A stretch of 64,000 nucleotides of DNA from Takakia lepidozioides (Eukaryota > Plantae > Bryophyta). The stretch is taken from assembly GCA_030704615.1 (NCBI GenBank), contig CM060732.1:62186001-62250000 (forward strand). Direction: 5' to 3'. How positions within the stretch are numbered: position 1 is the first letter of the stretch; every line of letters starts with the position of its first letter. Positions 2,001 to 19,593 of the stretch are shown here, one piece after another. Below the pieces are notes generated by a model that saw only the letters and a list, made by a program, of their open reading frames with translations, did no database searches and was not told where the DNA came from. The position numbers and the translations under genes were made by a program.

Positions 2001-5000
2001 TTAATGGGGTTTAACTTTACATTTATAGAAACGAACTGTCAGGGCAGTCAGAATTTGGAGGAGGACGCAGTACATAGCCAGAACGAGCATGTCTATCGGG
2101 ATTCGATGATGATTCAAACTCCGGTTTGCCTGCAGTTGAGTCCATACGAAAATGTTTTCGGCATCTCTCAGTCGGGGGCAGTCGCATCGGAGACATGCAC
2201 TTGGATCATTAAGGCATGCTGCATTTCGCCCCCCCTTCAAGCATTCAGGCTTAAAGGTGTCACAGAAGAAAGCTATGGAGGTGAGGCTGTTGAGCGCGTA
2301 CTGGAGAGGGTTTGTCCAGAAGACCCAGATCACGGATTTCAGAATTTCTCGTTTAGGAATAACAGAACCTCCTGTGGATGTCCAGAAGCTGATGAGGATG
2401 GGAATGACAACCGCTGCAAGCTGCGCAGGGACAAACACTCATTAAGGTATGCCATACTCAGATATCTGCATATGTACAGATAGAAAGGAAATGAAATGAA
2501 GTGGTACTCTATAACGTCCATGGAAAGCTCAAAGAGCTTGTGGGACAAGAGACAACAAGAAACGAGAAAGAGATGTGGTTTAGAAAGAACTGAGACTTTA
2601 TAATTGGAGAGCTAAAAGAGCTGAGAGAATGCAAGAAATAGAGAATGTTTGTTCTGAAATTATTGACCACTGCACATTATACTAGAACTGGTCTTCGAGA
2701 GAAGGGGAGAAAGAATTGGTGAGGGCAACACACTGTCAAGTAAGGGAACCTGGCATTGAAGGTGACCATACCTGTGGTAAAGGACTGACAAGTGCAATGA
2801 ATATACCCAGATATGAGATGACCAGAGTGAATTCAAAGAGGAGAAACCAGAAGCTGAAAAAGGAGGCTGCTGAGCCTGTTGCCATTTGTGCCATAAGGCA
2901 AAACACGGAACAGAAGATGATCGTAGCCACTGCCAAATACGGTACCTGTTTGAGACAGGTGGAGGAGCTTCAATCACACCCTTGTGAGAGAAACATAAAA
3001 TGTCTAGACGTAATGCATTATCATCACACGCTCTAGCTTTGCCCCATAGTTCCCACATGAAAACTCCATGTTGGATGACACCTCTCAGAATAAAACTCCC
3101 AGGCTCCTCAAAGTCAACATCAACTATTTGCTTAATTGAGCTGTCAGACACTTGCTAGTTTCAAACATGAATATGGGAATTAGTGGGAATTGGAAGTAGA
3201 AGAAAAGAATTGGAAGACATGATAATCACGACGTGCAGGGGTGGACCAAAAAGGGGTTACCTCAGCCAGAGCCCATGAAACATTGTGCCAAAAGACGCTG
3301 AATTGGTTTTTGGATTGTTCGCTTTCCTTTGTGACAATCTGCCTTAGGACTTGGGGAACCACATATTGTGCATTAGTAGCTCCCAGTAGAACACAGGCCA
3401 CAAACAGACTTTGAGACTTCACATTCATACCAACTGTTGTGCGGTAGTCGAGGTTGAAATAGATGGAGCCCATGGCCAAACCCAGAGCTAGAGTGGACGT
3501 CATTCTACCAAAACTATAATCCACATTTCGCCAGTTCAAGTGCTGCAATTTCATGTGAATGTAATAGGCCATCAATGCATAAGGAGCTTGATAACCTGTC
3601 TCCTTCAGCTCTGGTCCAATTTCTCCCTTAGAACAGCGTAGATGTTGCAGTTGGATATGGTTATGGAGGGCCAATTCACTCAATCGATACTGAAAGGCAT
3701 AGTCCCTCTGAGCCTTTTGACCAGCAGCACCATCGCCAATCACATCGATTGCGTAGGTTGCAGGGCTCTTGTTTGCTGTGCACAGAGGGGTACCTGGGAT
3801 AGCTTCAAAATATTTCTGCATCAAACAGTGGATTTCCAGCTAGTTTGTTAGCAAATTACGAAAAGAGTGAATTGAACCATCACGCTTGCACTAAGAGATC
3901 ACTGTTGAGAGGTTTCCCTGGAAGATACTCAGGGATCACCTAGCCCCTGTTCTCTCACTCTCCTAGCTTTGTTGTTCTGCTCTGTTCCTCCCATGGGCCT
4001 TCTCAGCCTCCCATGGATATTTCTCCGAGGGCCCAGGGGCTGTTTGGATCATATCTTTACTGTAAGCCAGATTATCCAGGGACGGAAAAAAGAAGGGAAA
4101 CCCACTTTTGTCTTTTTCTTGGATGTCAAAAAGGCTTATGACACAGTGTGGAGAGATGGTCTATGGCTCCGACTCTGGTCATCTGGGATCAAGGGATGCG
4201 GAGAGTGGTCCATAACTTGTATGCTAACACCAAAAGCTGTGTCACTGTTAATGGACAGAACTCTTAACTTCTTTGACATAGACCAAGGTGTAGCTCAAGG
4301 ATGTAACCTCTCCCCTCTGCTCTTCAATGTTTTCATCAATCAACTCCTCGAGGATGTGGAATGTGAGGGATTTCGGTTAAGGGTGGATGCCACCATACCA
4401 GCCCTTATGTTTGCGGATGACTTCGCAGGCACAGGGGAGACTCCATCCAATCTCCAGGAGTTGATTGATTGAGCAGAGAGATACTTTGACCTTTGGGGGC
4501 TAGAGGCTAACATCAGTAAATGTACAGAGGTGGCATTCAATGACCGAGGGGAGGGAGGAGGTGATCTCAAGTGGCAGTGGGGAAGCCAAGAGATTCCGGT
4601 CCTCCCTACCTATACATACCTTGGCGTTGAGTTTTCCTCCAACTGTAATTGGGATGCACATATTCCATGCTTTGCCGCATTATTAGGCCTGCCTTAGAGT
4701 ATGCATCTGCAGTATGGGTTGATAACTCTGGCTAAGTCTCAAGAATCCATTCAAGTGGGGCTGCTTAAGGAGTGCATGTCATCGTGCTCCAAAACAGCCA
4801 ACGTGACTGTTGGGGTTGAGTTTGGCATCCCTTCCTAAAGCTCCCGATGGGATGAATTCAATGTCGGATGGTGGGGTCAGATGCAACATATGTCTAATAT
4901 GAGATATCCTAAGTTAATCGACTCTATATCTGGGAAACAGGATTGCAGAAGAGATTCTCAAGGATCTGAATATAAGCCCGCAAGTCTTGTCTCTGCTGGA

Positions 5001-8000
5001 TAAATCTGACTTAGAGGCTGTAGTGTCCAAAGCCATGCCATGTCTGTTGCCATGTCTGTTGTCTGATGAAAATGAAGTTAGGCAGAAAACTTCCCTGAAC
5101 TTGTTTCCAGTCTGTGACATGGGAGAGGCCATCATGGATGACCTCAAGGGTTTACCCACCCTCGGCACTAGACTGAAGTTTAAACTCAGGGCGCGAAGCC
5201 TACCTTTGAACAGCAAACAGATGCAGAGTGGCGACAATCCCGGATGGACGCCAAAGCATTGGATCTAACACGAAATTGGTTCTGGGGTTGCAAAAGACAG
5301 ACCATTCTCTGGTCCGGTATGGTAGAGCATGGAGTCATTTCGAAAAAACCACCCCTAGTCCAGAAGCAAGGAGGGGTACAGCTTTCAGCACTTTTTGTAG
5401 ATTCGCATGCTGAGCCAGGGGAGGTATCACGAAAGAGGTGCGATGACACTCTCTTCAGACTTTGCGAAGAAGGCAAGTTCCCAAAAAGGGGGGGAGGAAC
5501 AAGAAACAAGAGAAGAAAACAAAAAGCTATAGTAAATTACTCAACGAGCGACAAAAACAGAAGCTATAGTAAAATACTCAAGCAGAGCGACCCTCCCAGC
5601 CAACAGCCTGGAGGAGATCAGGCAAGGAGATAGGCAAAGTGTCAGGCAGAGGCGGAAGACGAGATGACGCGGAGCTAGCCACATCAGCCTAATGCAAAAT
5701 AGAGATGGCTTGTGCTCTCTACAAAGCAACTGAAACACGTTGTCGATAGTAGGCGACAAGGACAGGAATTGCAATTGCCCGTTGTGTGGGAAACCTGAAG
5801 ACAATATTCATTTTCTGATTCATTGTCCTGGGTACTCTCATGAGAGAGACACCCTCTTCAAATCCATCAAGGGAATTGTGCCTGAACCTCTGTTTTCCAA
5901 CTTGGAAAGTCACGAGGCTGAGCCAAAAGCCCAGGCCCTTTTGGGGCCTGGTTATTTGGCAAACCACACACAGCAGATTGATGCTTGTGTGAAGGGATTT
6001 CTAGAGGATATCTGGAAAACTTGGATTAATAGTCTGTTCGAAGGTAAAGTCATACTACCGGCAGAGTAAACTGCTTCTCTTCTTACGGTACACCTTGGAG
6101 GCATGGAAAGGTGCAAGGGAAGAATTCATGTGCATTAAAGATCCAGCAACTCCAGCCTTTTTATGAAATCAAGTTGGCATGTGGTGGCATCTTCTAGAAA
6201 CCCTCGGAGTTGAGAGAGCTCTCAGGTTGGCATGAGGAAGGTCATCCAGTCACTGACAAAAAGAAATCCTCATGAAAAAGGACTTCCCCTTGGAGGCCCA
6301 AAGTGTCCAAGGGACACTATAACCACCTCTTCTAAGGTCATTGGGGATGGTTTAGGGTGGGCTCCCCACAGTCTGCAGATAGAGGGTGGTAGGTGGGACA
6401 ACCTGCGGTGTGCTGACCGCTTGCGCCAGAGATGACAGGAGGGAGATTGAAACTGAAGATCATTTCTTCTTTGAATGTCCTCTCTAATATGAGATCCAAG
6501 GGAGATACTATTGCCTATTCCGAGATAACCAATCCGTTACTAACGAGGATCAGAAATGCTCAGCAGCAGATCTGAGTGAGGTGTTACATGTTGACGATCC
6601 GTTCAGTAGTGGGCAGCTTGTTGAGGGCCCTAAGCTCTTTCTTGTTTCCCACTTTCTCTTTCTTTACTAGGAGAGCCTGGATCCTACCCAAGATCATACA
6701 TGTCCTCTCTAAGATGTTTTGGATTTGCAGATGCTTAGCCTATCAGCTTGCTGGAGAGGTGACTTTGCTACCCAATATAAGCTGAAACTCTCCACGTGCA
6801 ACGCAAGACAGAAAGGACCTCAAATTACGATATTCTTGAATGCCATCTGATCCTTCAAAATAAAACTGAGAACCAAGGTGTTGACAATCAACTCAATAAA
6901 ACGACTTGAAACTGTGACAAGACATGTTCCAAGCGCATGGCAGAGCTTCAACGAAGTTCTTTGTGATAGTTCACGCTCTTTATATTGTGTCATTCACTTC
7001 ATTTCTCCTTGTTTGATCCACAGTCCCAGCACATGAGCTCATCACCCTTACTGTGGACAACATAAATTTTCTTTCACTACTACTGTCCATTCAGAGCAAT
7101 CCATCACGGAGGTCTTCTTACGAGGATTAGAGTAGCATTTCTAATAAGGCCCCCCGAAGTTTGAGAATCGCTCGAGATTGAATTGTAGTTACTTGTTGAG
7201 GGCCTAATTTTCTTCTTGCCATAAGCTTTATAAGCTTCACGCAGATATGATGAAGTTAACCTGTCTACAGCTATATCTCTCTCTTCTGAGGGGCATTGGG
7301 GAGGGTTAGGGTGGGCAGTCTGCGGATAAAGACGTGAGGACCACCTGTGCCCCACTTGCACTGGAAACAACAGGGAAATTGAAAGTGAAGAACATTTCTT
7401 CTTTCACTATCCTTTCCAGTTTAAGATCCCTGGAGATTATATTGTCTACTTTGAGATAGCCAATCCCTCACACAGGTCGTCCATTACAAGGGTCAGAAAT
7501 GCATAGCAGCATATCTGCATGAGGCGTTGACTCTTAGACAATAGCAATTGTTGTTTTTGGGCTGCTTGTGGATGGTCCCTCTCTTTCTTGTTTCATGCTT
7601 TCTCTTGCCCCATGAGCTCTTTGAGCTTTCCCAGCACGCTAGAAAGTACCATTTCATTTCTTTTGTAGCTCCAAGGTTGTGGTGGCTGGCTGCTGGGGTC
7701 CCCACTTGTCTGTCTTGTTTTCCTTTGGTTCCATAGTCTCTTAGCTTCCTGTCGATGGTATGATGTTCCTTTCTTATGTATCTGATTCATGATGCCGATA
7801 ACATTATATAATATCAGGCTCATGTCACCATGTCTTTCATTGGGGAACCTCTTCGTCTTGTTTTATTCAACTGAATCACTCCATCAAGGCCATAGCACAG
7901 GCAAGGGCATCAGCTCAGCCACCTGTCAGCCAGGCTTAAAACCAGCAGGCGTCTGCACAAGACTCTTGCTTTTTTGGAGAGGACCCAGTTTGAGTGAGGA

Positions 8001-11000
8001 AGAGATAAGGATGGGAATTGAGGAAGACAGTAGGAGAGAAAATACCCGGACAAGATCTGCATTGTTTCCAACAGGGCCAAAGTAGACAGTTTCACCCCCT
8101 TTCTTGAGAATCTGGAGGGTACTGAAAGCTGCAAGCTGCTGTAGACTTGGCTGCTGCAGTGCTGCTATCACCACCCTTCCTGTGCAGGCAATTTTCTGCA
8201 TTTGACAAACCCACATACACATTTAAAAAAGCATCGGGCCATATCTCATTGGGACAGAAAGTGATGAAACCATTAAATGCATTTTAAGTGTCAGGATCTG
8301 ACAGCAAATAACTGGCCTTAACAATTTTGTTTTGTGATTTTTCTATTTTGAAGCTTCCAAAAGGTAGTTGAGTAGTTCAGGCATCGGAGAGATACTGTAC
8401 AGTCGTGACCTGCATTGGAGGTTACACAACATAGTACACATCCCAGCCATGGGTAGGGGTATAATCTCGCCAATTCGGTATTTTCAACTGTCTAGGGATT
8501 GACCCCAGAACATAACGGCGGTCACAGGGAATCAATTACAGATTTGGTTGCATGGGACACCCACCTTTAGGGTTTGGATGATACTGCTGGATGCATGACT
8601 GTCAAGTCCTTTGGTGGGCTCATCCAAAAACATGACACTGGCATTGCCTGCCAGCTCCATGGCTATGGCAAGCCGAACACCTTGCTCCACCGTGATATTT
8701 TTTTCCCCTAGGGATCGTAGCAGCTTATTTGCGATATGCTTGATCTGCACCAGCTGCAGAACCTGCATCAACCAAAACAATGTCGAGGTTAAGTGGCAGG
8801 AAGAAATGAAAGGAAACGACATGAGACTTAATAACATCCAAGGAAAGAGCTCATGGGACAGAAAAAGGTAACGAACTTTGACACATCACATAGAAACAAA
8901 AGGAAGGAAATAAGAAACACTCATACCCGGGAGGCTCAAAAGGGCCCAATTCACACAGTATAACACATAGAAAAGATAGACAAAGGAACAATAAAACATC
9001 CCATGCCGAAAATTGTTAACAAGCAAAAGAAATGGGAAATGTGGCCTAAATTGCTGGATTGCCCGAACAAGAAAGAACAAATGAAATGAAATGAGAACAC
9101 TTATGACATCCCTGGAAGCTCAAAAAAGCTTACGGGACGAGAAAGCAGGAAACAAGAAAGAGAGTGGAGCCCGCAACAAGCAGCCCAAAAAGCAACAACT
9201 GATGACAAGGGATTGCCGCTTTCTGCAGATAATGAAGCTCTAATACAAGGGCCTCCAAGAAGCCATGGTACAAAGTAGAACAACAAGAAAGACCGAGAGG
9301 GGGAAGATGAAAACACCTCTTCAACAAAATCCCTGCGCTCCTCCAGGGAGTACAATTTACCAAGTCGCATCGCAGCGCTGAATTCTAGAGCTTCTTGCAC
9401 TGTCATATGTGGAGGATGTGCACTCAGATTCTCTACAAAACCCATCACATTTACAAAGGTTTCCTGTTTCTTGGGGTATCCATTCACTAAGATTTGGCCC
9501 CGGATTCGCCCCTTTGCTACTTTCCGTCCTGGCATCAGATGTAAACAACCACACCTGTATAGCTTCAGAAAACAGTTCAAGTCGAGAAAATATAGTAGGG
9601 ATATAGACCTAGATAAGGAACCACACAAACAGAAGAGGAGTGATGTTAACTCATACCGGCAAGGCAATTTAACAGTGTAGTTTTGCCTGCCCCAGTGCTT
9701 CCAACCAATGCAACAATCTGCCCTGGCTCAGCCCAACCAGACACATACTTGAGAATGGTGTGGGGTTGTCCAATTTCAGCAATCATGATGTCAAAGCTTA
9801 GTTCATGCCAGGATAGAGTGACAGCCACTGGAGTATGAGAAAGCTCTGCCACTGCAGAGCCCCATTCTTCGTCTTTCTGCATAAGTTCCTCCTTACAAAG
9901 CTTCACCTACACGGCAATCCCCAACATGTGCTGACTCAGTGACTTTACCCCATCTCCTTGCGTGTGATTCAACCCGTAGTCTTTAAAGATAGGACAGACT
10001 CAAACATAAAAATTCAGAGAATAGGATGTTGTGTGTCACCTCCACATCAGATATTGTTATCCTCTGGGGTGCATGCTGAAGCCTTGCAAGAGAGAAGTAA
10101 GCCCCAATGTTGAGGAGTAAAAACCAGCCGACCAACACCGCAATAGAAATCCCTATCCAGTGACTGCCTGTGTAGAGCTGACTTTTGGCCAGGAAGACAT
10201 CACCGACCGTGTGTTGTCGTCTCCCGATGCACTGGGGAATATTTGCCAGGTTTGGGACCTGGCTGCAGACCATGCTATAGCTTTTGGAGTTAAATTCATT
10301 GATAATAAGTGCTGTCATGCCCCATTGCAACGGGTCCAGATAATATGCCCAGATCCAGTAGTGGGGCACAACAAAGCGAGGCACCAAAAACCCAGCAAAG
10401 AGGATAAATATTCCTGTCAACAATCCTGCAGGCAAATATGGATGCTTTAATCATTGATGTGTCTTAAATGGGAAAGAAATGAAATGAAATGGTACTATGT
10501 AGCGTTGAGCTCCTTCCCTTAGTTTTCTTCCCATCCCTGCTAGAGTGAAGCTCAATTCTGAAAATGAGATGTCATCGACTCACAGAGAGCCGGAACATTT
10601 CTATACTGACTAATCCAACCAAAACGTTCCTGTTGCAGCTATAGCATGTGCAATCTGTAACCCTCCCACATTACTCTCTTTAAGTTCTTTGCATCATAAT
10701 AAGACCATAGCTAGCGATATGTTACCAATAATCCGATTTGCTGTGTCACGGTCAGGGGCAAAAGCACTCATAAACCGCACCAAGGACGCTCCATTCAACG
10801 CTGTCAGTATCATGATGACATAGTATACCCAAAAATGCCAGCCCCCATCTGTAACAGTGAGGTTTGTCATAAAATATACTATAAGAGTCCAGATAGTTGC
10901 CTGCAGACACCAAGATCATATTCTGTTAGAACCCAGTGGTGATAAACTAAGTATTGCTTACTGATTGGGATGCTACAAAAATGAGTCATTTATCACTAAT

Positions 11001-14000
11001 TTTAACTCATAGATGCTCAGAAAAGCTAGCCAAGAGGTCTTAGGAATTTTAAGTCCACAAGAACTGAATCAAATGGAGATTTTCCCCAAGAAAGATAGCT
11101 CAAGGGACATACCCTGTGGGGTGTACTGCCCAACAAGGGGCATGGGAAGGACAGAAGTCTGTGGACCAGGTAGCCAGCTAAATGGTCTTTATAAGGTCTG
11201 TGAGAAGCGCAAAGAACTTATGGGACAAGAGGAAGACATGAAATGAAATGGTGCTTTGTAACGTCCGCGGAAAGCTCATAGAGCTTATGGGACAAAATGG
11301 AAAGAAAAACATGAGAGAAAACAGGAAACCAGAGTCAAAGATAAGAACTATTGTTCGAGTGATTGTCTAAGGGTGAATGCCTCGTGCAGGTAGGCTACCA
11401 AGCATTTCTGATCCTCATAGTGAAAGACCTCAGTGAGAGATTGGTTTCCACGGAATAGACAATGGAATCTCCCACGGATCTCATAGTATAGAGGGCAATA
11501 GAAGAAGAAGTGTTCTTCAGTTTCAATTTCCTGGTTGCGCCCTGTGCAAGCTGGACAGAGGCGGTCCTCCCGCTGAAGGTTTTCCCATCTGCCAGTCTCT
11601 ATCCGTAGGTTGTGGGAGCCCACGCTGAACCGCCCCAAAGCCCTCAGGAGAGAAGGAGATAAAGATGCCGAAAGGTAATTGCGCCGCAAGATTCTATCAT
11701 CTTGTAGAACCAAAAATGTTTCTCGATAGAAATGGAGAAAGAAACAAGAAGAGAGAGGGCCCCCCCACAAGCAGCCCAAACGCAACTATTGCTCCGGCAA
11801 TTGTCTAAGAGTCAACGCCTCATGCAGGTGCTTGCCAAACATTTCTGATCCAAAAGAAACTTATAACGTCCACCATGAGAAGGTAACGAGAACAGAACCT
11901 CCAAGAGTGTGAATGGTAGACCCCCGAAAATCTTGGCGAAGAGGTACGATTGGGGACGGAAAAAGCGGGCACCCTGCTGTTTATAGTAGATTGCACGTTC
12001 TTCCATAAGAGCAGGCAGCTGCCCTAAGTTGAACAGCATGAGATTCATCAAAGAGATGAAGAAAACACTGCAGAGTAAATTGATATCCAGTTGGTTGGGA
12101 TCATTCTTGACTCCAAAAAACACCATGCTTGTGAACAAAGACATAATCAGAACCTGTCATAACAATTCCAAACAGGGCACGGTTCTTTAGGAACTAGAAA
12201 CCGGATCCTTTCCCGTCACCCTTCCATCTACCTCCTCACCCTTCTCCACTCGTTGCTATGCACCATTTTATGATGAGGAATGCAAGATTGCTAGACGTCA
12301 CATCAAATCTTTACTACTTGATACCAATTCTTCTCCAGAGTCCACTAACCTTGCTCTTAAGCACTATAAGTCCCTCATTAGATCCAAAAAGAGAGCCTAC
12401 ACTATCAAGTTGCAATCTTCTTTCCTTGCTAAAATCAGATATTCTCCTCGTTCTTTTTGGTCCCTCCTTAAACCTCATAGAGACCCTCCCCCAATCACTG
12501 ACATTCACGTCTGGCATGAGTATGCACAGTCTTTGTACCATTCCCCAACCCAAACTCCCTCTCCCATAACCTCTAAACCCCTTCACTTCTCTCTCTTTAC
12601 TACGGCCAATGTCAGCAAGGCAATCAAGAAGCTGCAAAATGGCAGGGCAGTGGACATTTCAGGACTTCAGAGTGAATTCATCAAGCATGCTGCACCTACT
12701 TTAACCCCTTTTATAGCTCACCTCTTCAATGAGGTAGTGCAACGGGGCTTTCCAACAGAGTGGACAAAGAGCATCATCCACCCACTCTTCAAGAGCGGTG
12801 ACAGGCTCGCACCAACCAATTATCGTACTATCATGGTGTCCTCGTTACTTGCTAAACTGTTTGGGGCAGTAGTGGCCATGGAATTGGATGATTGGGCTGA
12901 GTCCTCTCGCATTCGTGCTGAGGGACAGGCTGGTTTCCGTCGCAACAGATTCACTATTGACCACATCTTCACTCTTCAGGTTATGGTGGAAAGTGCGCGC
13001 TATGACAAAAGAATGGTCTATGTTTGCTTCGTGGACTTTCACAAAGCCTTTGATTCAGTTCCTCGGGACCTTCTCTTCCAACGGCTCCAGAGTTCGCATG
13101 TGTACCATTGCAATCCGAGGCCCTCTTCCGGCTTCCAATCTTTCTCCATAGATTACAGGCCCTTCCACCCAAGGGGCTCGTGGCAAGGGCCCTCACAACA
13201 TCTATGAGGCTCAAAGCTGCAGGTTTCAGGAACTCCTGGTATGCTCGAGTGGACAGCTTATTTCAACGCAACGGACTCTCTACTGCTTTCCTATTACCAA
13301 TGAATCCAGATGAGGTGGACATCACATCCAGACATGACCGCAACAGACTCGTTAGGAGAGAGCTTATGGAATTACATGTCAAGAGAACTTGGAAGCTACC
13401 CAATCTCACGACAAAGCTCCACTTCTATCGAGAGACATTCTTGGTGCTCCGCGATGATAGAATCTTGAGACCAAATTACCTTTCAGCATCCTTATCTCCT
13501 TCCCTCCTGAGGGCATTGGGGCGGTTCAGGGTGGGTTCCCACAACCTACGGATAGAGACTGGCGGATGGGAAAACCTGCAATGGGAGGACCGCCTATGTC
13601 CTAGGGCGCAGCCAGGAAATTGAAACTGAAGAACACTTCTTCTTCTACTGCCCTCTATACTACGAGATCCATGGGAGATTCCCCTGTTTATTCAGTGGAA
13701 CCCAAACTCTCACTGATGTCTTCCACTATGAGGATCAAAAATGCTTGGCAGCCTACCTGCACGAGGCCTTCACCCTTAGACAATCGCTAGAGCATTAATT
13801 GTTATTCTTGGTTTCTGGATTTGTTCCTCTCTCATGTTTTTTTCTTCCATCTTGTCCCATAAGCTCTATGAGCTTTCCGTGGACATTATAAAGCACCATT
13901 TCATTTCATTTCATTTCTTTTCCACCAATTCCAGAGCCTTGAGAGGAACTCCCAAAACCAATATAAATCTCCAAGGGCCCATAGGACAGAGAAAAACAAG

Positions 14001-17000
14001 AACCACTTCAACCATCTAGAGAATGCACTCAATAAGAAGTTTTTTGCCGTAGCCTTGGATCAGAGTAGTGAGACCCTACCTGCGCCATCCGGAGCGCAAG
14101 GCCAAGTTTGTTTCGCCAGGTGACCTTCAGCTCCCGCGTTAGCAAAAGCTGAAATTCAGCTCCGAAATTTAGAACATATTCCCTGTCAAATTGTGGACCA
14201 TGAGTTCCTGTCACCTGTAAAAGGCATTCATGTTACAGGTGTGGCACCTTACTTGGATGGTAATTCCTTTTTTCCGATCCTGCACACACGCCCCCTCCTC
14301 TCTGTGTGTGTCCAAGAGCACTACTGGAATCACTCTACTAGCAACTTCCATTTGCCCCCCATCTCTCTGCCTCTTGGTGTGCCTCCAGTCTGCCTGGCCA
14401 GATGTATTAATGCAAGGCTGGAATAATAATACATCCATCTCTCACAGACTCCAACAATACAGAAGCCAACAGTTCCACCCCCATGGAAGGCAAACGTTCA
14501 TGATATTTACCTCTTCAAACGGTCTTTCTAACTGCAATCGGACAGGTTCAGCGACATGCTCAACGGCTCCAGCCAGCCCACCGAGAAGAGTGCTATCTCT
14601 TGCTCGATCATTAGTGTTAAAATATTTCAGCATTCCACCAGCACCCCCAATGGCCACCACTTCATCTCCAGGAGCAATGGCAGTACTATGGTCCATTGAG
14701 ACTTCTGCAAGACTCCCCCCTTTCTCTACCACACCTGCCACAAGGGTTGAGACTGCTTCCTCTCCTCCGCTCCCCTGGTTTGGTCGGGTTTCAGTAAACC
14801 CAAGGCCTAATGGCTGGTTCCCCTGTAGTCCCATTGCAGATCAACAGCAAACCCAAATGATTTGAAAAGCAAATATACTGTATGCTTGAGAACTCCTGTC
14901 TCTATCTCGTCTAGCCAAACCAAGCAATGGCAGATGTCTAGAGAAAGCCCTATAGAGCACATCCTCCTTCCTTATAGCTCCCTATTCAAAGGCACCCCCA
15001 AGAGTGAGAACCACTACCTGTACCCAAAGTTCCTGAAGGAGGTCAACTGAATTCACAACTCTGCGAATGTCTCTGAAGGTTGGAGACAAGAGGTAGCTAG
15101 CCACAAAATCCTCATGTGCAAGGCGGGGGAAACCTGGCTGCAGGAACTGGCTGCCCTCAGGTGTTGTCACCTCCGCGAGAAATTCGCTGACCGTCAAATG
15201 CCTGGGCTTCACATACCTACGGAATAAGCCGGATAATTGACATAAATCTTGAGCTCAAAGGGAGCGAGAAAATTCACACATGGCGGGTAAAGAACCACTT
15301 CCAATCTCTCAGAGAACTTCCAAGAAATGATGATCACCTACCCAAGGCTTTCAAAGTATGGAAGCACATCTTGACGGGGGCCCTGGAACATAACTTGGCC
15401 TTCATCAAGCAGAATGAGGCGATCAAAAAGCTCAAAAATTTCTGGTGAAGGCTGCACAAGTGATGCCATAACTACAACCTGATGGACCCGAGCAAAGATG
15501 CGAGCACTTGTCACCAGATCATAGGTCGCCGAATCATCCACCCCTACGTTCAAGGTCACATAAGTCAGAGATGGTCAGATAGAAGGAGAGGTTAGAAATT
15601 CAATGCAAAAGGAGCCAGGAGGAAATGAAATGAAATGAAATGGTTCTTTATAAGGTAAAATGGGAGAGAGAGGGAAGGTACTGAAGAGTGTGTACACAAA
15701 ATTCGAAAAAAATCAAGACAATATGACGCCCATTTGCTATTTAGTCTAATATCCTTACTTACCTGCATTGAGCTGATCAAAAATGTAGACAGCATAGCTG
15801 CCTGCCATCATTTCAGCTGTGGTTAAACGATGCCGCTCCTCCTCCGTCAGCGAAGGCTGCATCAGGCTACCAACGGGATGTCCACCTATCCTTTTCAGAC
15901 CCAACATACTAAGGGACAATTCTAGCATTGGGTCCTGCCCAGCCTTGAGAGCCTCCCCCATGATCTCTTTCATCTCCCGGCTGTAATCTTCCAGCTTGTA
16001 TGCTTGACTGCAATCACGTGCAAATTCAATTGTTTCTCTCACAGTGAGTTGGGGTAGATGGACATCAAGAGAGTTCACGACGGCTGTCAGGCGATGGTAC
16101 CGGACATCTTGCACATTATTCCCATTGTAAGTCACAGTGCCATCAAGTGCACTGCCTGGACCTAGTGGACGGCCGGCTATCACTTGGAGTAAAGCGCTCT
16201 TGTCACGTCCAGCAGGGCCTGATATATGGTGCACAGGAACATAAATAAAACATTGAGTATGAGCTTGCGCATACTTTGACACCTCAATATTAGAAATGTC
16301 TGAACAATGCCCCCGTATCACTGTGCTGTTGTTGCATAAGACTTCAGCTTGCTGCTTGCCTAGGATAATTATCTGTATCCCAGTCACTCTCTATGCATCC
16401 ATACACTTTTCTGGTTAAACTGGGCACAAGATTTCGAACTTCACAAGCCATCGGCAACAAGAAGCCTGTGACAGAAATTAGGCATACAGCAAGAAATCAG
16501 AGACAGACTGAATACAGCATATTATTGAGAAGTCATAGGTCAAGCAAATTAGGAGTCTCGGGATATTTACCTACAACCAGAGTGAGGGTACCGGGCATCA
16601 GGTACCCAGTTACATCTTTCAACACAGTCATATTCTGGAAGGTTTGCTTTTGCAATCTCAATAGTTCCTTCATCTGGCACCCCCCCCCAAAAGGAGACGA
16701 CGCATCAAAGGATAGGTCAATACTTGCCCATTGAGAAAGGAAAATTTACTCGTTCCTATGAATGTGGACTTCAAACATACTCATTAGGGGTGTTGCCCAT
16801 GTAATACTGACAGTCCTGGACCACTCATGCGGCTCGCAAAAAGCAGGGTTTGAAACTGACTCCACACCATTTTGGAGCTCATCGACAACCCACAACAATC
16901 CTGTAGCAGCTTTGATGGTGTTGGTGTGATGCAGAATCGTTACCACCTCTGCCTAGCACAGGTGTAAATCACTTGAATGTGGTTGCACTGATAAGTCACA

Positions 17001-19593
17001 GTGTTGAGGAATAGTACAGGCAAGTTTATGAATCCCACAGATAGGGCTCATGGCTGTCACAAGAGAAAGAAACAAGAGCAGAGAAGGGCCCTCCACCAGC
17101 AGATCAAAAACAACTCTTGTTCAAGGGATTGTCTAAGAGTCTGGAGAGAGGGGTCCTTATACAAGCAGCCCAAAAAACTACTATTATTCGAAGGATTGTC
17201 TAAGACTCAATGCCTCATGCAGATATGCTGCTAAGCATTTCTGATCCTCGTAATGGAAGGGGTATGTGGGAGATTGGTTATCTCGGAATAGACAATAGAA
17301 CATCCCACAATCGCATAGTAGAGAGGACAGTGAAAGAAGAAATGTTCTTCACTTTCGAAAGCCCAATGAGTTAATGGACTAGAACACATTTGAAACAAAA
17401 CCAACAGTAAAAGACTGCAGAAAGAAGAGCACCTACTGAATATAAAGCAAAGAAATGAAATGAAATGAAATGGTGCTTTATAACATCCGCAGAAAGCTCA
17501 TAGAGCTTATGGGACAAAATGGAAGAAAACATGAGAGAGGAAACAAATGAAATGAAAGAAATGAAATGAAACGGTACTTTACAACATCCCAATAGGAATG
17601 TATAACATCCCTTCAAAACCCAAAGGACACATGAATGCATTAAAAAACACTAAATACGAGAAGAAATAATTAGTGAGTGGAAAAAGTCAATTATAAAAGT
17701 AGCCCACCTTGGTGTACATGGTCTCATAGCCTGTCTCCACCTTCACCTTTGTTGAGTAGGTCAGTCCCTTGAACTTCACTATCTGTCCATGGGAGTTTCT
17801 TAGAGCACGTCAAACTTCACTCATACGTCTAATGGGGAGAATGCAGTGGGAGAGCTACACAATGACCGCTCACCCTGGCCATAGCTTCCTACCAGCTTTG
17901 ACACAATTTGTATTGACAAGTTTGCTTGTGGACTTTTGTGGCTGACAGTAAGTGTGACAGGACTCTTTCTGTCATTGTGTTTTTTGTGGTCCAGCTATTA
18001 ATTCCTGATTCCTCGCCCTCTGGTTTGAGCAAAGGTAATAGAATTCAGAACTGGGAATGGGATATCCGCCAGCCTCGTGTGTGAAACTCAGCCAGAAAAT
18101 AGCCAAGATTAAAGATTTGAACAGTGCAGAAAGAGGAATTTTCCATCTCTTATTTTGATGCAATGCGTGTCTGACCTGCTTTTATCCCAAACAAGTGAAA
18201 TGGAAGACAATGTCATCAAGCAGAGTCAAACCTGGCTGGGAATGGGAGTTAGATATGGCTGCACCATCAGCAAATACTCCAATAGACCTTCCTTCAGCAA
18301 TAGGTCCATGCCCTGTTGCTCCCGCTCTGTTCCTCCCAACTCCACCCCTGATCGTAATTTTGTGAGCAAGCTCGAAATTTGACCAGCTTCTTCCGTGAGT
18401 CCATGTTTCAGTAAGGCTTGGTGATACAGACCCACTACATGTATCAGAAAGGCTTGTGGAGCTTCTCCCAAAGCGGAATAAAAAGCTTGCGATAATTCTC
18501 CTGGTCTTCCTTCATCCCCTCTGAGATAGCGGTCATAATGTAGGCATGATCCTGATGAGCCTTTCCCAGGGGTTTCAAATCCAAGTACCGGAGTGTCTGG
18601 AGTTTCCCTGTCACCTGGCCTATAACGCAAGCCCTCCTCAGAGGCCTCTGAGAACCGGAAATCATCCCCATCTCTTTCATCCTCACCTGGATCATAGGAG
18701 GTAGATTATAAATATGTCTGAACAAAAGGGTACCTGCACTTGCCACTTGCACACATGGTCAACAGGAATTTTTAAAAAGCAGAAGGAAAGAAGTAGATAA
18801 GGCGACAGGGACCCAATTGCACAAGGTAGAATGGCATGAAACCACGCAAGAAAAACATCCAACTCCGCCTGATCCCGATAGGAAGTGCCTCATGCATGCC
18901 TTGGGGTCCTCAAAGAGACTGAGTATTCATACCTGTGCTGTATTGTACAGCACCCTGTGTGGATCCCTCTGTGTCTACAAAGCTCTCATGTGATTGCCTG
19001 GTTGTTTCAAATCTGTCAGTTAGTCTGAATGAAACTTGATCCGAGCTTTTGGCCAACCGGATATCCTCAAGCCCAAAATAGCCTCCTGAACAACCTCGAG
19101 CACGGGCACTCTCCCTCATACATTGAAGGCTGAGAGAATGGTCAAGCCATTCATCCAACCCCTCCTCGAGCAAAACTCTGGGATCAAACAACAACCCTGT
19201 TGTGGACGCTGCTCTGCTGGCACCTTCCACAATTGGACCTGAAAAGCTTACATGTGCTGTATGGCCTCTCGATCCGCTAGAACGCCCCCTCCGCAACACT
19301 GCATCACCATTGCCACATGAATTGGTGGCAACAGAGTACCGACTGGCAAGTGTCAGAGGTGGTGGAAAGTCTTGCTCTGTGAAGACACCATCACTGGCCA
19401 CTTCAGGCTCCCAAGGTGACGTCCTCACATGGCTGAAGGTAGATACTGAGCTGAGGCAAGGAGTTCCCACTTCTCCGAATGCCTCTCTGCCCAACCCATC
19501 AGAGCTGACACTCTCTGATCTCCCCGTCTGTTCTTCTATACCACTTAGCTCACTCGGTTCTCGCCTGTGTGAGCTCCTGTAATAGCCCACCAT
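2001..19593 (-). CDS. Full-size ABCG (PDR-type, NBD-TMD-NBD-TMD) transporter-like protein, 19 exons, about 1790 aa, with internal PDZ-like domain
   Basis: Exons with phase-compatible GT-AG junctions: 19593-18933, 18686-18232, 17782-17708, 16673-16571, 16218-15763, 15543-15342, 15216-15018, 14822-14511, 14214-14080, 12153-11899, 10900-10726, 10425-10040, 9906-9657, 9528-9317, 8762-8565, 8195-8046, 3815-3261, 2945-2772, 2420-2001 (5373 nt, open). PDR motifs: VLKDVTGYLMPGTLTLVVG, LTVRETIEFA, QPSPEIFELFDRLILL, EFLAEVTT, ERAIYYKQ, WIWAYYLDPLQWG..ALIINEF, GSTGAGKTTLL, NGYPKKQETF, FLDEPTKGLDS, GGETVYFGP, YFEAIPG. The ATG is preceded by an AG, so an upstream exon cannot be excluded. Confidence 0.9.
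2488..2565 (-). mobile_element. LINE family A extreme 3' end (hairpin plus CATTT tail)
   Basis: Reverse strand reads CCCACAAGCTCTTTGAGCTTTCCATGGACGTTATAGAGTACCACTTCATTTCATTTC. Confidence 0.75.
4035..6070 (+). mobile_element. LINE family B (RTEX-like) 5'-truncated, degenerate copy in an ABCG intron
   Basis: RT motifs RGCLDHIF, FLDVKKAYDTVWR, GVAQGCNLSPLLF, MFADD; C-terminal CPLCG..EDNIHFLIHC; frameshifts and stops; closely similar to 42458-44086. Confidence 0.92.
5229..5758. mobile_element. 530-bp insertion nested in the LINE, TG...CA ends, GGCGACA direct repeat at both ends, no TSD
   Basis: Absent from the homologous LINE copies (CAGAG|AGGAAAGG at ~43673 and ~57323). GGCGACA at 5230-5236 and 5752-5758. 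Internal ~35-bp tandem duplication near 5515-5592. Confidence 0.75.
6340..6575 (+). mobile_element. LINE family A 3' fragment
   Basis: Degenerate GSH.L.IE.GRW.NL / ETEDHFFF.CP region, similar to 13520-13760. Confidence 0.75.
7295..7660 (+). mobile_element. LINE family A 3' fragment with CATTT tail
   Basis: Similar to 13520-13916; GAGCTC-TTT-GAGCTT hairpin followed by ACCATTTCATTTC. Confidence 0.8.
8803..9200 (-). mobile_element. Two LINE family A 3'-end fragments (about 8803-8865 and 9078-9200)
   Basis: GAAATG repeats on the plus strand plus AAGCTC..AGCTT hairpin motif. Confidence 0.65.
11236..11850 (-). mobile_element. LINE family A 3' portion plus adjacent second fragment
   Basis: ORF 11348-11785 encodes GRFSVGSHNLRIETGRW...CPAC...ETEEHFFFYCPLY; tail (CATTT)n; inverted near-copy of 13415-13916. 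Confidence 0.9.
12250..13917 (+). mobile_element. LINE family A (RTEX-like), 5'-truncated, with internal deletion of the RT core
   Basis: NYRTIMV, QAGFRR, TIDHIFTL, FVDFHKAFDSVPR, then a jump at ~13093 to the C-terminal region (no GC.LSP or YADD motif). Ends AAGCTCTATGAGCTT...(CATTT)4. Confidence 0.92.
14511..14822 (-). other. PDZ-like domain exon inside the ABCG gene
   Basis: Phase 0-0 exon of 312 nt encoding GNQPLGLGF...TLVAGVVEKGGSLAE...IAPGDEVVAIGG...PVRLQLER: GLGF loop, GG.A helix, GD.VVAI strand and terminal strand in canonical PDZ order. Confidence 0.72.
17040..17600 (-). mobile_element. Cluster of LINE family A 3' fragments
   Basis: Repeated matches to the family A 3' end; GAAAT arrays at 17452-17471 and 17545-17571. 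Confidence 0.8.

Follow-up and report, generated by a model that had tools for sequence, protein, structure and literature searches.

The stretch of DNA analyzed here (hereafter the window) comprises 64,000 nucleotides of the moss Takakia lepidozioides (GenBank assembly GCA_030704615.1, contig CM060732.1, positions 62,186,001 to 62,250,000). Its minus strand carries a gene for a full-size ABCG/PDR-type transporter, and the part of this gene that links the first nucleotide-binding domain (NBD1) to the first transmembrane domain (TMD1) encodes an additional segment that probably adopts a PDZ fold. Searches with the window used single exons, and the spliced context was examined through the database orthologues P0026, P0024, P0016, P0025 and P0027. 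By tblastn, the Physcomitrium patens orthologue P0026 (1749 residues) was colinear over its residues 94-1739 with positions 19197..2016 of the minus strand. In this comparison the protein runs from a long N-terminal region through NBD1, the insert and TMD1 to NBD2 and TMD2. No in-frame stop was found among the ABCG exons read. The exons and the elements of the inserted domain are collected in Table 1.

The exon at 14511-14822 (minus strand) has a stop-free translation, GNQPLGLGFTE...VRLQLERPFEE, and is bounded by an AG acceptor and a GT donor, in phase 0 at both ends. The exon upstream of it terminates with ...LLQELWVQ at 15018. An earlier, preliminary description of the locus had predicted that this exon is spliced in frame through the junctions 15018^14822 and 14511^14214, and both were present exactly in spliced contigs of the public run X1, which were identical to the window (0 mismatches, 100%). 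The same contigs also removed three GT..AG introns further upstream (15216^15342, 15543^15763 and 16218^16571). Because canonical introns had been removed, the contigs derive from spliced RNA. Skipping of the exon was not observed: the exon was included in the X1 contigs and none lacking it was reported among those assembled, a form of data that a rare skipped isoform could escape.

The closest solved relatives of P0026 were the fungal PDR pumps Cdr1 and Pdr5 (E ~1e-51), to which it aligned in four stretches corresponding to NBD1, TMD1, NBD2 and TMD2. The NBD1 alignment ended at P0026 residues 620-623 (Pdr5 425) and the TMD1 alignment restarted near residue 769 (Pdr5 483), leaving a linker of about 146 residues in P0026 compared with 58 in Pdr5. 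The approximately 90-100 additional residues are due to the PDZ-like insert, and its proposed location between NBD1 and TMD1 was borne out by this alignment. The duplicated, reverse topology of full-size ABCG/PDR proteins was seen in the exon map, in the Pfam domains recorded on the relatives (PF00005 ABC_tran, PF01061 ABC2_membrane and PF08370 PDR_assoc) and in the four Cdr1/Pdr5 stretches. The NBD-TMD-NBD-TMD order is thus common to the moss protein, to Pdr5 (7P03) and Cdr1 (9S2C), and to plant transporters of the PEN3/ABCG36 type. The clade described here differs from these in an N-terminal region of about 330 residues that is rich in serine, and in a signature, Q-loop, H-loop and NBD1 Walker B that are degenerate yet conserved within the clade.

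A phmmer search of 1.84 billion representative proteins with the exon alone returned 20 matches at E<=1e-3, 11 of them at E<=1e-10 (best 7.8e-36), most being exon-sized fragments from unannotated contigs; similarity at this level is far more than chance would give. Region-restricted searches using a full-length match identified eight full-size ABCG proteins with the insert. Identity to the window exon was 72% in a JGI moss protein (P0027), 69% in P. patens (P0026, without gaps) and 49% in the lycophyte Diphasiastrum complanatum (P0025). Among liverworts it was 37% in Marchantia polymorpha MpABCG27 (Mp7g16260, P0024), 35% in Marchantia paleacea (P0023), 33% in Riccia fluitans (P0016), and 38% and 34% in Riccia sorocarpa (P0021 and P0022). 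The putative architecture NBD-PDZ-TMD, for which a search in other plants had been proposed, is found in mosses, liverworts and one lycophyte. The named carriers were bryophytes apart from this lycophyte, and an absence of the insert from other plant groups is suggested.

When the window was compared with metagenome contig L001, which represents a second moss, the proportions of nonsynonymous (pN) and synonymous (pS) differences in the exon were 0.17 and 0.69, an uncorrected pN/pS of 0.25; pS is near saturation, so the true ratio lies below this value. The flanking exons gave 0.34 and 0.41 in the same comparison. Between the window and P. patens the insert was 69% identical and NBD1 62%, the insert being as conserved as the catalytic core. 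The insertion is real, expressed, ancient and selectively maintained, and it has been kept since before the divergence of mosses, liverworts and lycophytes. In M. polymorpha, MpABCG27 has been listed as a homologue of AtPEN3, with phosphorylation raised in bir mutants (bioRxiv 10.1101/2024.08.14.607940); the detection of this phosphorylation indicates that the protein is made.

Both introns that flank the PDZ exon were found at the same sites in the Marchantia locus L004, between YWVQ and GSQPWG and between ERPHT and NWEK. The loci used for this comparison were region 3355-3684 of L004 and region 6010-6540 of the moss contig L001. In the second moss (L001-L003) the downstream intron is again at the same site and the upstream intron is absent, a single open reading frame (ORF) from YVKP... 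to ...RPFQ spanning both exons. With the flanking introns shared with Marchantia, the exon structure is ancient, and it lends weak support to the origin by exon shuffling that was proposed in the preliminary description. Against shuffling are the intron missing from the other moss and the content of the exon itself, which is not a whole domain because the first strand, β1 (..WVQG), is encoded by the exon upstream.

Structural prediction with AlphaFold2 was carried out on residues 648-782 of P0026, which include this upstream strand. With a 39-sequence alignment the model reached a predicted local distance difference test score (pLDDT) of 65 and a predicted template modeling score of 0.59, the pLDDT of the core strands being 73-83. 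Its elements were β1 (SVQEHWVQG), β2 (LGFTERR), β3, a long loop, β4 (EVVAVG), β5 (LKY), αB (LAEAIDE) and β6 (VRLQLERP). The order β1-β2-β3-(loop for αA)-β4-β5-αB-β6 is that of a canonical, non-permuted PDZ domain. In a Foldseek search of the PDB the best 50 matches were all PDZ domains, at probability ~1.0 and with template modeling scores (TM-scores) by target of 0.34-0.67, mostly above 0.5. VIA-align, run independently of Foldseek against 48,161 PDB representatives, likewise gave canonical PDZ domains for all 50 listed matches (Z 8.6-10.1), mostly with root-mean-square deviations of 2-4 Å over 75-100 residues, nearly the whole of each target domain; in the wide search 73 chains scored Z>=8. 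The best PDB matches were all of canonical order and nearly all metazoan. A shape search of the ESM Atlas returned PDZ proteins, some from streptophytes, at TM-scores by query of 0.54-0.65.

Comparisons that started from sequence pointed to the same fold, though at sub-threshold strength. A language-model feature search of the ESM Atlas with the window exon placed all named neighbors in the PDZ clan, with scores of 0.83-0.91. The profile of the 20-sequence family had five matches in the PDB, all of them colinear PDZ domains (PDLIM2 and LIMK2; E 0.15-0.5). The LIMK2 PDZ domain aligned over profile positions 6-100, and the last strand of PDLIM2, LRLQLDRS, aligned to VRLQLERP. The exon alone, when modeled, gave Foldseek matches at E 3-9 only, of which 10 in 12 were PDZ domains, those of Prc and Ctp among them.

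The positions of the characteristic motifs also fit a PDZ domain. A loop of the pattern P-[LW]-G-[LV]-x-[FI] lies directly before the modeled β2 and is kept across mosses, lycophyte and liverworts as PLGLGF, PLGVSF, PWGVTF or PLGVNI, the liverworts having PWGVTF or PLGVNI. The modeled β2 begins just after the loop glycine, as would be expected for a carboxylate-binding loop of the x-hydrophobic-G-hydrophobic type. The preliminary description had reported a GLGF loop at this site; the hydrophobic-glycine loop is indeed conserved, but the literal GLGF is confined to mosses and the conserved register starts two residues upstream. A conserved G-D at 14664-14669 precedes β4, as in the GD-hydrophobic hairpin typical of PDZ domains. 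Among the family columns M43, L96, Q97 and R100 were invariant, and K34, G36, S42 and T46 were conserved in at least 90% of sequences. A loop motif specific to the family, S-M-x-H-T, was nearly invariant, and the pLDDT of the model was low in the loop at residues 61-64.

Compared with canonical PDZ domains such as Scribble PDZ1, DLG1/PSD-95 PDZ1, ZO-1 PDZ1, PDLIM2 and LIMK2, the insert shares the predicted fold and order of elements, the x-hydrophobic-G-hydrophobic loop before β2, the G-D-hydrophobic hairpin at β4 and a last strand like that of PDLIM2. It differs in having no significant match to a hidden Markov model, in a longer loop with S-M-x-H-T in place of αA, in a variable αB, in a basic residue before the loop that varies, and in its location, which is the linker of a transporter and not a scaffold protein.

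Table 1 The transporter gene of the window, the exons and introns around the insert, and the predicted elements of the PDZ-like domain.
Feature	Position in window	Strand	Basis or remark
Full-size ABCG/PDR-type gene	2001..19593, approximate	minus	About 19 coding exons; stop 2001-2003; start putative
Main NBD1 exon	15763..16218	minus	Spliced contig with GT..AG at both ends; 62% identity to P0026 383-532
NBD1 C-terminal exon, ...ASLVQPSPEIFELFDRLILLDEGQVMFQGPRQDVLPYFESLG	15342..15543	minus	Joints 15543^15763 and 15216^15342 in X1 contigs
Linker exon, YVKPRHL...VNSVDLLQELWVQ	15018..15216	minus	Translation and contig joints; last residues form putative PDZ strand β1
Phase-0 intron 5' of PDZ exon	14823..15017	minus	GT..AG joint, 195 nt removed; donor GT 15017-15016
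Symmetric 312-nt exon, 104 codons, putative PDZ β2-β6	14511..14822	minus	Translation, spliced contigs, homologues
Candidate carboxylate-binding loop P-L-G-L	14802..14813	minus	P, L and G columns conserved at 0.8-0.9
Predicted β2, LGFTETR	14784-14804	minus	DSSP of model
Predicted β3, VSTLVAGV, then EKGGSLAEVSMDHST	14682..14753	minus	The latter replaces αA and is modeled as a long loop
Predicted β4, EVVAIG, and β5, LKY	14622..14663	minus	Mean conservation 0.81; DSSP of model
Predicted αB, LAGAVEH	14556..14576	minus	Mean conservation 0.57; would wall the peptide groove
Predicted β6, VRLQLERP	14520..14543	minus	Most conserved element, mean 0.93; returns beside β1
Phase-0 intron 3' of PDZ exon	14215..14510	minus	GT..AG joint, 296 nt removed
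Exon for the segment before the first transmembrane helix (TM1), VTGTHGPQFDREYVLNFGAEFQLLLTRELKVTWRNKLGLALRMAQ	14080..14214	minus	Pdr5/Cdr1 TMD1 alignment resumes here

Several observations weigh against the assignment to PDZ. Every signal at the level of sequence was sub-threshold. The window exon had no Pfam PDZ match at E<=10, the best among 20 family members was a single match to PF00595 (E 0.076) that fell short of the gathering score, and Pfam records no PDZ domain for any of the eight full-length relatives. No profile of the clan (PF00595, PF13180 or PF17820) was matched significantly. A moss-heavy profile of 39 sequences matched PDZ domains in the PDB more weakly than the family profile (E 0.43-1.7), and the feature search of the ESM Atlas with the Marchantia segment found nothing above 0.77. 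The AlphaFold2 model of the exon alone (20 sequences) was too weak to use, with a pLDDT of 53. Of the five models of P0026 residues 648-782, three had pLDDT values below 40, αA was not formed, its place being taken by the long loop, and the sequence modeled was not the joined protein of the window but its orthologue, which shares 69% identity with it in the exon. The PDZ identity proposed at the outset thus has no significant match in Pfam or in the profile searches of the PDB but agrees with the modeled fold. That the segment has a PDZ fold is, on the predicted structures, likely; it falls short of certain because of the moderate pLDDT, the three failed models and the missing αA helix.

Our reading is that this exon and the final few residues of the one before it encode an expressed and selectively maintained PDZ-fold domain, which lies in the NBD1-TMD1 linker of a distinct clade of full-size ABCG/PDR proteins and operates by the docking mechanism proposed below; we assign this reading as a whole a probability of roughly 0.6. 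In the PDZ fold β1 pairs with β6, bringing the ends of the domain together. With its ends adjacent, the domain could sit in the linker as a hairpin excursion without disturbing the transporter. Its place would be at the cytosolic face, next to NBD1 and to the helix that precedes TM1. A short peptide, either the C-terminus of a partner or an internal strand, would dock by β-strand addition between β2 and αB, and the conserved P-L-G-[LV] loop would hold the end of the ligand. Docking of this kind would anchor a partner at the transporter, or it would link binding of the partner to the NBD1-TMD1 hinge of a protein with degenerate ATP sites. Peptide binding and scaffolding are here inferred.

The conservation of the P-[LW]-G-[LV] loop argues for binding of a ligand end. 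The elements that would form the groove were the least conserved of the domain (β2 0.51 and αB 0.57, compared with 0.93 for β6), and αB contains insertions and deletions, with several residues fewer in the lycophyte and the liverworts. At the site of the basic residue upstream of the loop, Physcomitrium has K, the window and Marchantia have Q, and Diphasiastrum and Riccia have H. Among the orthologues, neither a conserved basic residue at this position nor a conserved specificity residue at αB1 was found, and S-M-x-H-T and RLQLERP, the features with the strongest conservation, do not determine ligand binding in PDZ domains. The variable β2 and αB, the indels, the changing basic residue and the conservation outside the groove all argue against simple recruitment by C-termini. 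The proteins' own C-termini were considered as ligands in cis and set aside, since these tails (…KVKPH, …NKAHH, …NRKNL, …KGKAS) are short and basic, are not conserved and offer no obvious ligand. Docking of peptides in the canonical manner is accordingly proposed only tentatively, at somewhat less than even odds. It ranks first among the functions considered, with a regulatory role that is intramolecular or directed at lipids as a close rival.

This rival, which we consider rather unlikely taken by itself, holds that the domain has a PDZ-like fold without canonical C-terminal binding and acts within the molecule in a structural or regulatory role, or that it may contact lipids of the inner leaflet, as some PDZ domains do. 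In the intramolecular version, the S-M-x-H-T loop and the RLQLERP strand may pack on NBD1 or on the N-terminal region. The distribution of conservation fits it well, being highest outside the groove in β6 (0.93), β4/β5 (0.81) and the S-M-x-H-T loop, as do the variable αB and the changing basic residue. NBD motifs that are degenerate and yet conserved suggest altered communication between domains, and the insertion adjoins the pre-TM1 segment at the membrane face. The x-hydrophobic-G-hydrophobic loop, kept from liverworts to mosses, would be hard to explain in such a module without a role in holding a ligand end. A complex prediction of the P0026 N-terminal region and NBD1 with the PDZ segment, run without alignments and with the fold of the partner uncertain, scored 0.00 and supports neither possibility.

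Improbable, in our view, is that the segment is not a PDZ domain at all but a lineage-specific linker, rich in β-structure or partly disordered, whose AlphaFold model fell by accident into a common shape. The lack of Pfam PDZ domains and of any sequence signal better than E 0.05, the pLDDT of 53-65 with three models of five failing, and the absence of PDZ-like feature neighbors for the Marchantia segment would all be accounted for, and best Z scores of 7-8 are common for models without a true match. An accidental shape is difficult to reconcile with the agreement of four partly independent lines on one fold, namely the profile comparison with the PDB, the language-model features, the pair of structure aligners and the search of the ESM Atlas by shape. 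Nor does it sit easily with two PDB searches whose 50 listed matches were all PDZ, aligned over near-whole domains mostly at 2-4 Å with Z up to 10.1, or with motifs that fall where a PDZ domain would have them.

There is very little to recommend the view that SMDHSTAIAPGDEVVAIGGAGGMLKY is the relic of a blade from a WD40- or Kelch-type β-propeller. It would account for the best phmmer match of the exon in the PDB, the WD40 protein Sqt1 (E 0.054, residues 46-67), for Pfam Kelch_6 and Kelch_4 matches at E 0.05-0.07 in a few members, and for the WD40/Kelch repeat proteins that made up the non-family matches of the large phmmer search. These scores are sums over 3-6 stretches in WD40/Kelch proteins (up to 13 in other repeat matches), each a hairpin of 20-30 residues; in the insert the hairpin occurs once, a single blade cannot fold alone, and the whole-domain models match PDZ domains and not propellers. 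Sqt1 was therefore rejected as a hairpin-level resemblance, and the WD40/Kelch or low-complexity repeat proteins of the large search as products of summed repeats. Pfam matches to YajC, Kelch, HepII_C and PH_22 at E 0.02-0.12, seen with the exon and the 20 members, were dismissed as noise. Finally, a gene-model artifact or pseudo-exon in a decaying gene, to which the transposon fragments in the introns and the degenerate ATPase motifs might point, has practically no chance of being correct, being refuted by the spliced contigs that contain the exon, its pN/pS of 0.25, the retention of exon and borders in Marchantia, the colinearity of the whole gene with its orthologue and the lack of in-frame stops in the exons read.

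The ATP sites were examined by inspection of the ABC motifs in the window (15763-16218 and 8565-9894) and in the relatives P0016 and P0021-P0026. The exon at 15763..16218 encodes the Q-loop region together with a Walker A (GPAGRDKS), a signature and a Walker B that are all degenerate. Across the family the NBD1 signature reads P[ST]LTxxExH[RH], and the D of the NBD1 Walker B is followed by N, H or Q. In NBD2 the Walker A and Walker B (DE) are intact and the glutamine of the Q-loop and the histidine of the H-loop are replaced, so that one composite ATP site pairs the intact Walker motifs of NBD2 with the degenerate signature of NBD1. The degeneration of the ATPase sites, claimed from the window, thus appears correct for the family as a whole, and by inspection the state of these motifs would suit proteins that are not ordinary pumps. 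At about residues 375-385, P0026 reads LTLVVGS---GKRTF where its relatives have G-P-P-G-x-G-K, a gap that is either a true deletion of three residues or a splice-site error in the public model.

A bolder proposal is that the clade, which was found here in non-seed land plants only, no longer pumps and has become a membrane receptor, regulator or scaffold equipped with a PDZ domain, in which this domain captures the tail of a partner and the degenerate ATP sites act as a slow nucleotide switch instead of a motor. The partner might, for example, be a kinase or channel of the SERK/BIR-controlled phospho-network that includes MpABCG27. Both the proposal and this choice of partner are speculative, and we hold them to be doubtful. 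If true, it would give the ABC superfamily its first PDZ module that is intrinsic to a transporter. CFTR, MRP2 and MRP4 bind NHERF/PDZK1 in trans, the transporter providing the C-terminal ligand and a separate scaffold the PDZ domain; to our knowledge, and within the reach of the present searches, it is only in trans that ABC transporters otherwise meet PDZ domains. Coupling of an ABC transporter to a PDZ domain at the cytosolic face of the membrane is common to these systems and the present one, whereas in the moss protein the PDZ-like domain is built in and the C-terminus is not a conserved PDZ ligand. The PDZ domains of HtrA/DegP, Ctp/Prc and site-2 proteases, which are circularly permuted, act in cis as regulatory sensors of peptide ends. 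As PDZ domains within membrane-associated machines they offer a plausible functional analogy, but the best matches of the insert were all of canonical order.

The finding is best described as a probable PDZ-fold insertion in a known transporter family and not as a new kind of system. A literature search for PDZ domains in plant ABCG/PDR proteins found no paper describing such an architecture, and the phosphoproteomic note was the only mention of MpABCG27 found. The protein had been called undescribed; this holds for the domain, which has gone unrecognized, but not for the genes, which are annotated as MpABCG27 and as gene models in Physcomitrium, Riccia and Diphasiastrum. Eight public gene models carry an unannotated domain. 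A PDZ-fold module in the NBD1-TMD1 hinge would wire protein-protein recognition directly into an ABC machine in a new way, and its co-occurrence with conserved degeneration of the ATP sites raises the question of whether the clade still pumps. With orthologues in M. polymorpha (MpABCG27) and P. patens, both easily edited, and with one symmetric exon open to in-frame deletion, these proposals are directly testable.

Other features of the locus were also recorded. The N-terminal region contains a conserved helical block (window 18229-18681, minus strand; about residues 181-287 of P0016 and 228-335 of P0026) with the sequence FYSAL..APQA.LIH.V.LYH..L..HGL ... DLLLK.GLLKY....P.LPP.P.QV. It looks like a divergent form of the region at the N-terminus of plant PDR proteins and is preceded by a long, serine-rich and poorly conserved stretch. 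The introns of the ABCG gene contain ORF fragments of retroelements (reverse transcriptase-like and related) at 12410-13207, 3969-4472 and 13108-13623 on the plus strand and at 11348-11785 on the minus strand. A motif resembling HKL[FY]ELS.D[IV]I..HFISF recurs throughout the window in short ORFs of either strand. Many transcript contigs from both runs (X1 and X2) matched 15617-15717, which is intronic, and 14018-14057, just 3' of the exon at 14080-14214. These contigs have unrelated loose ends, with a summed depth of about 2162 in X1 and 498 in X2, and the two sites look like small dispersed repeats present in many transcripts.

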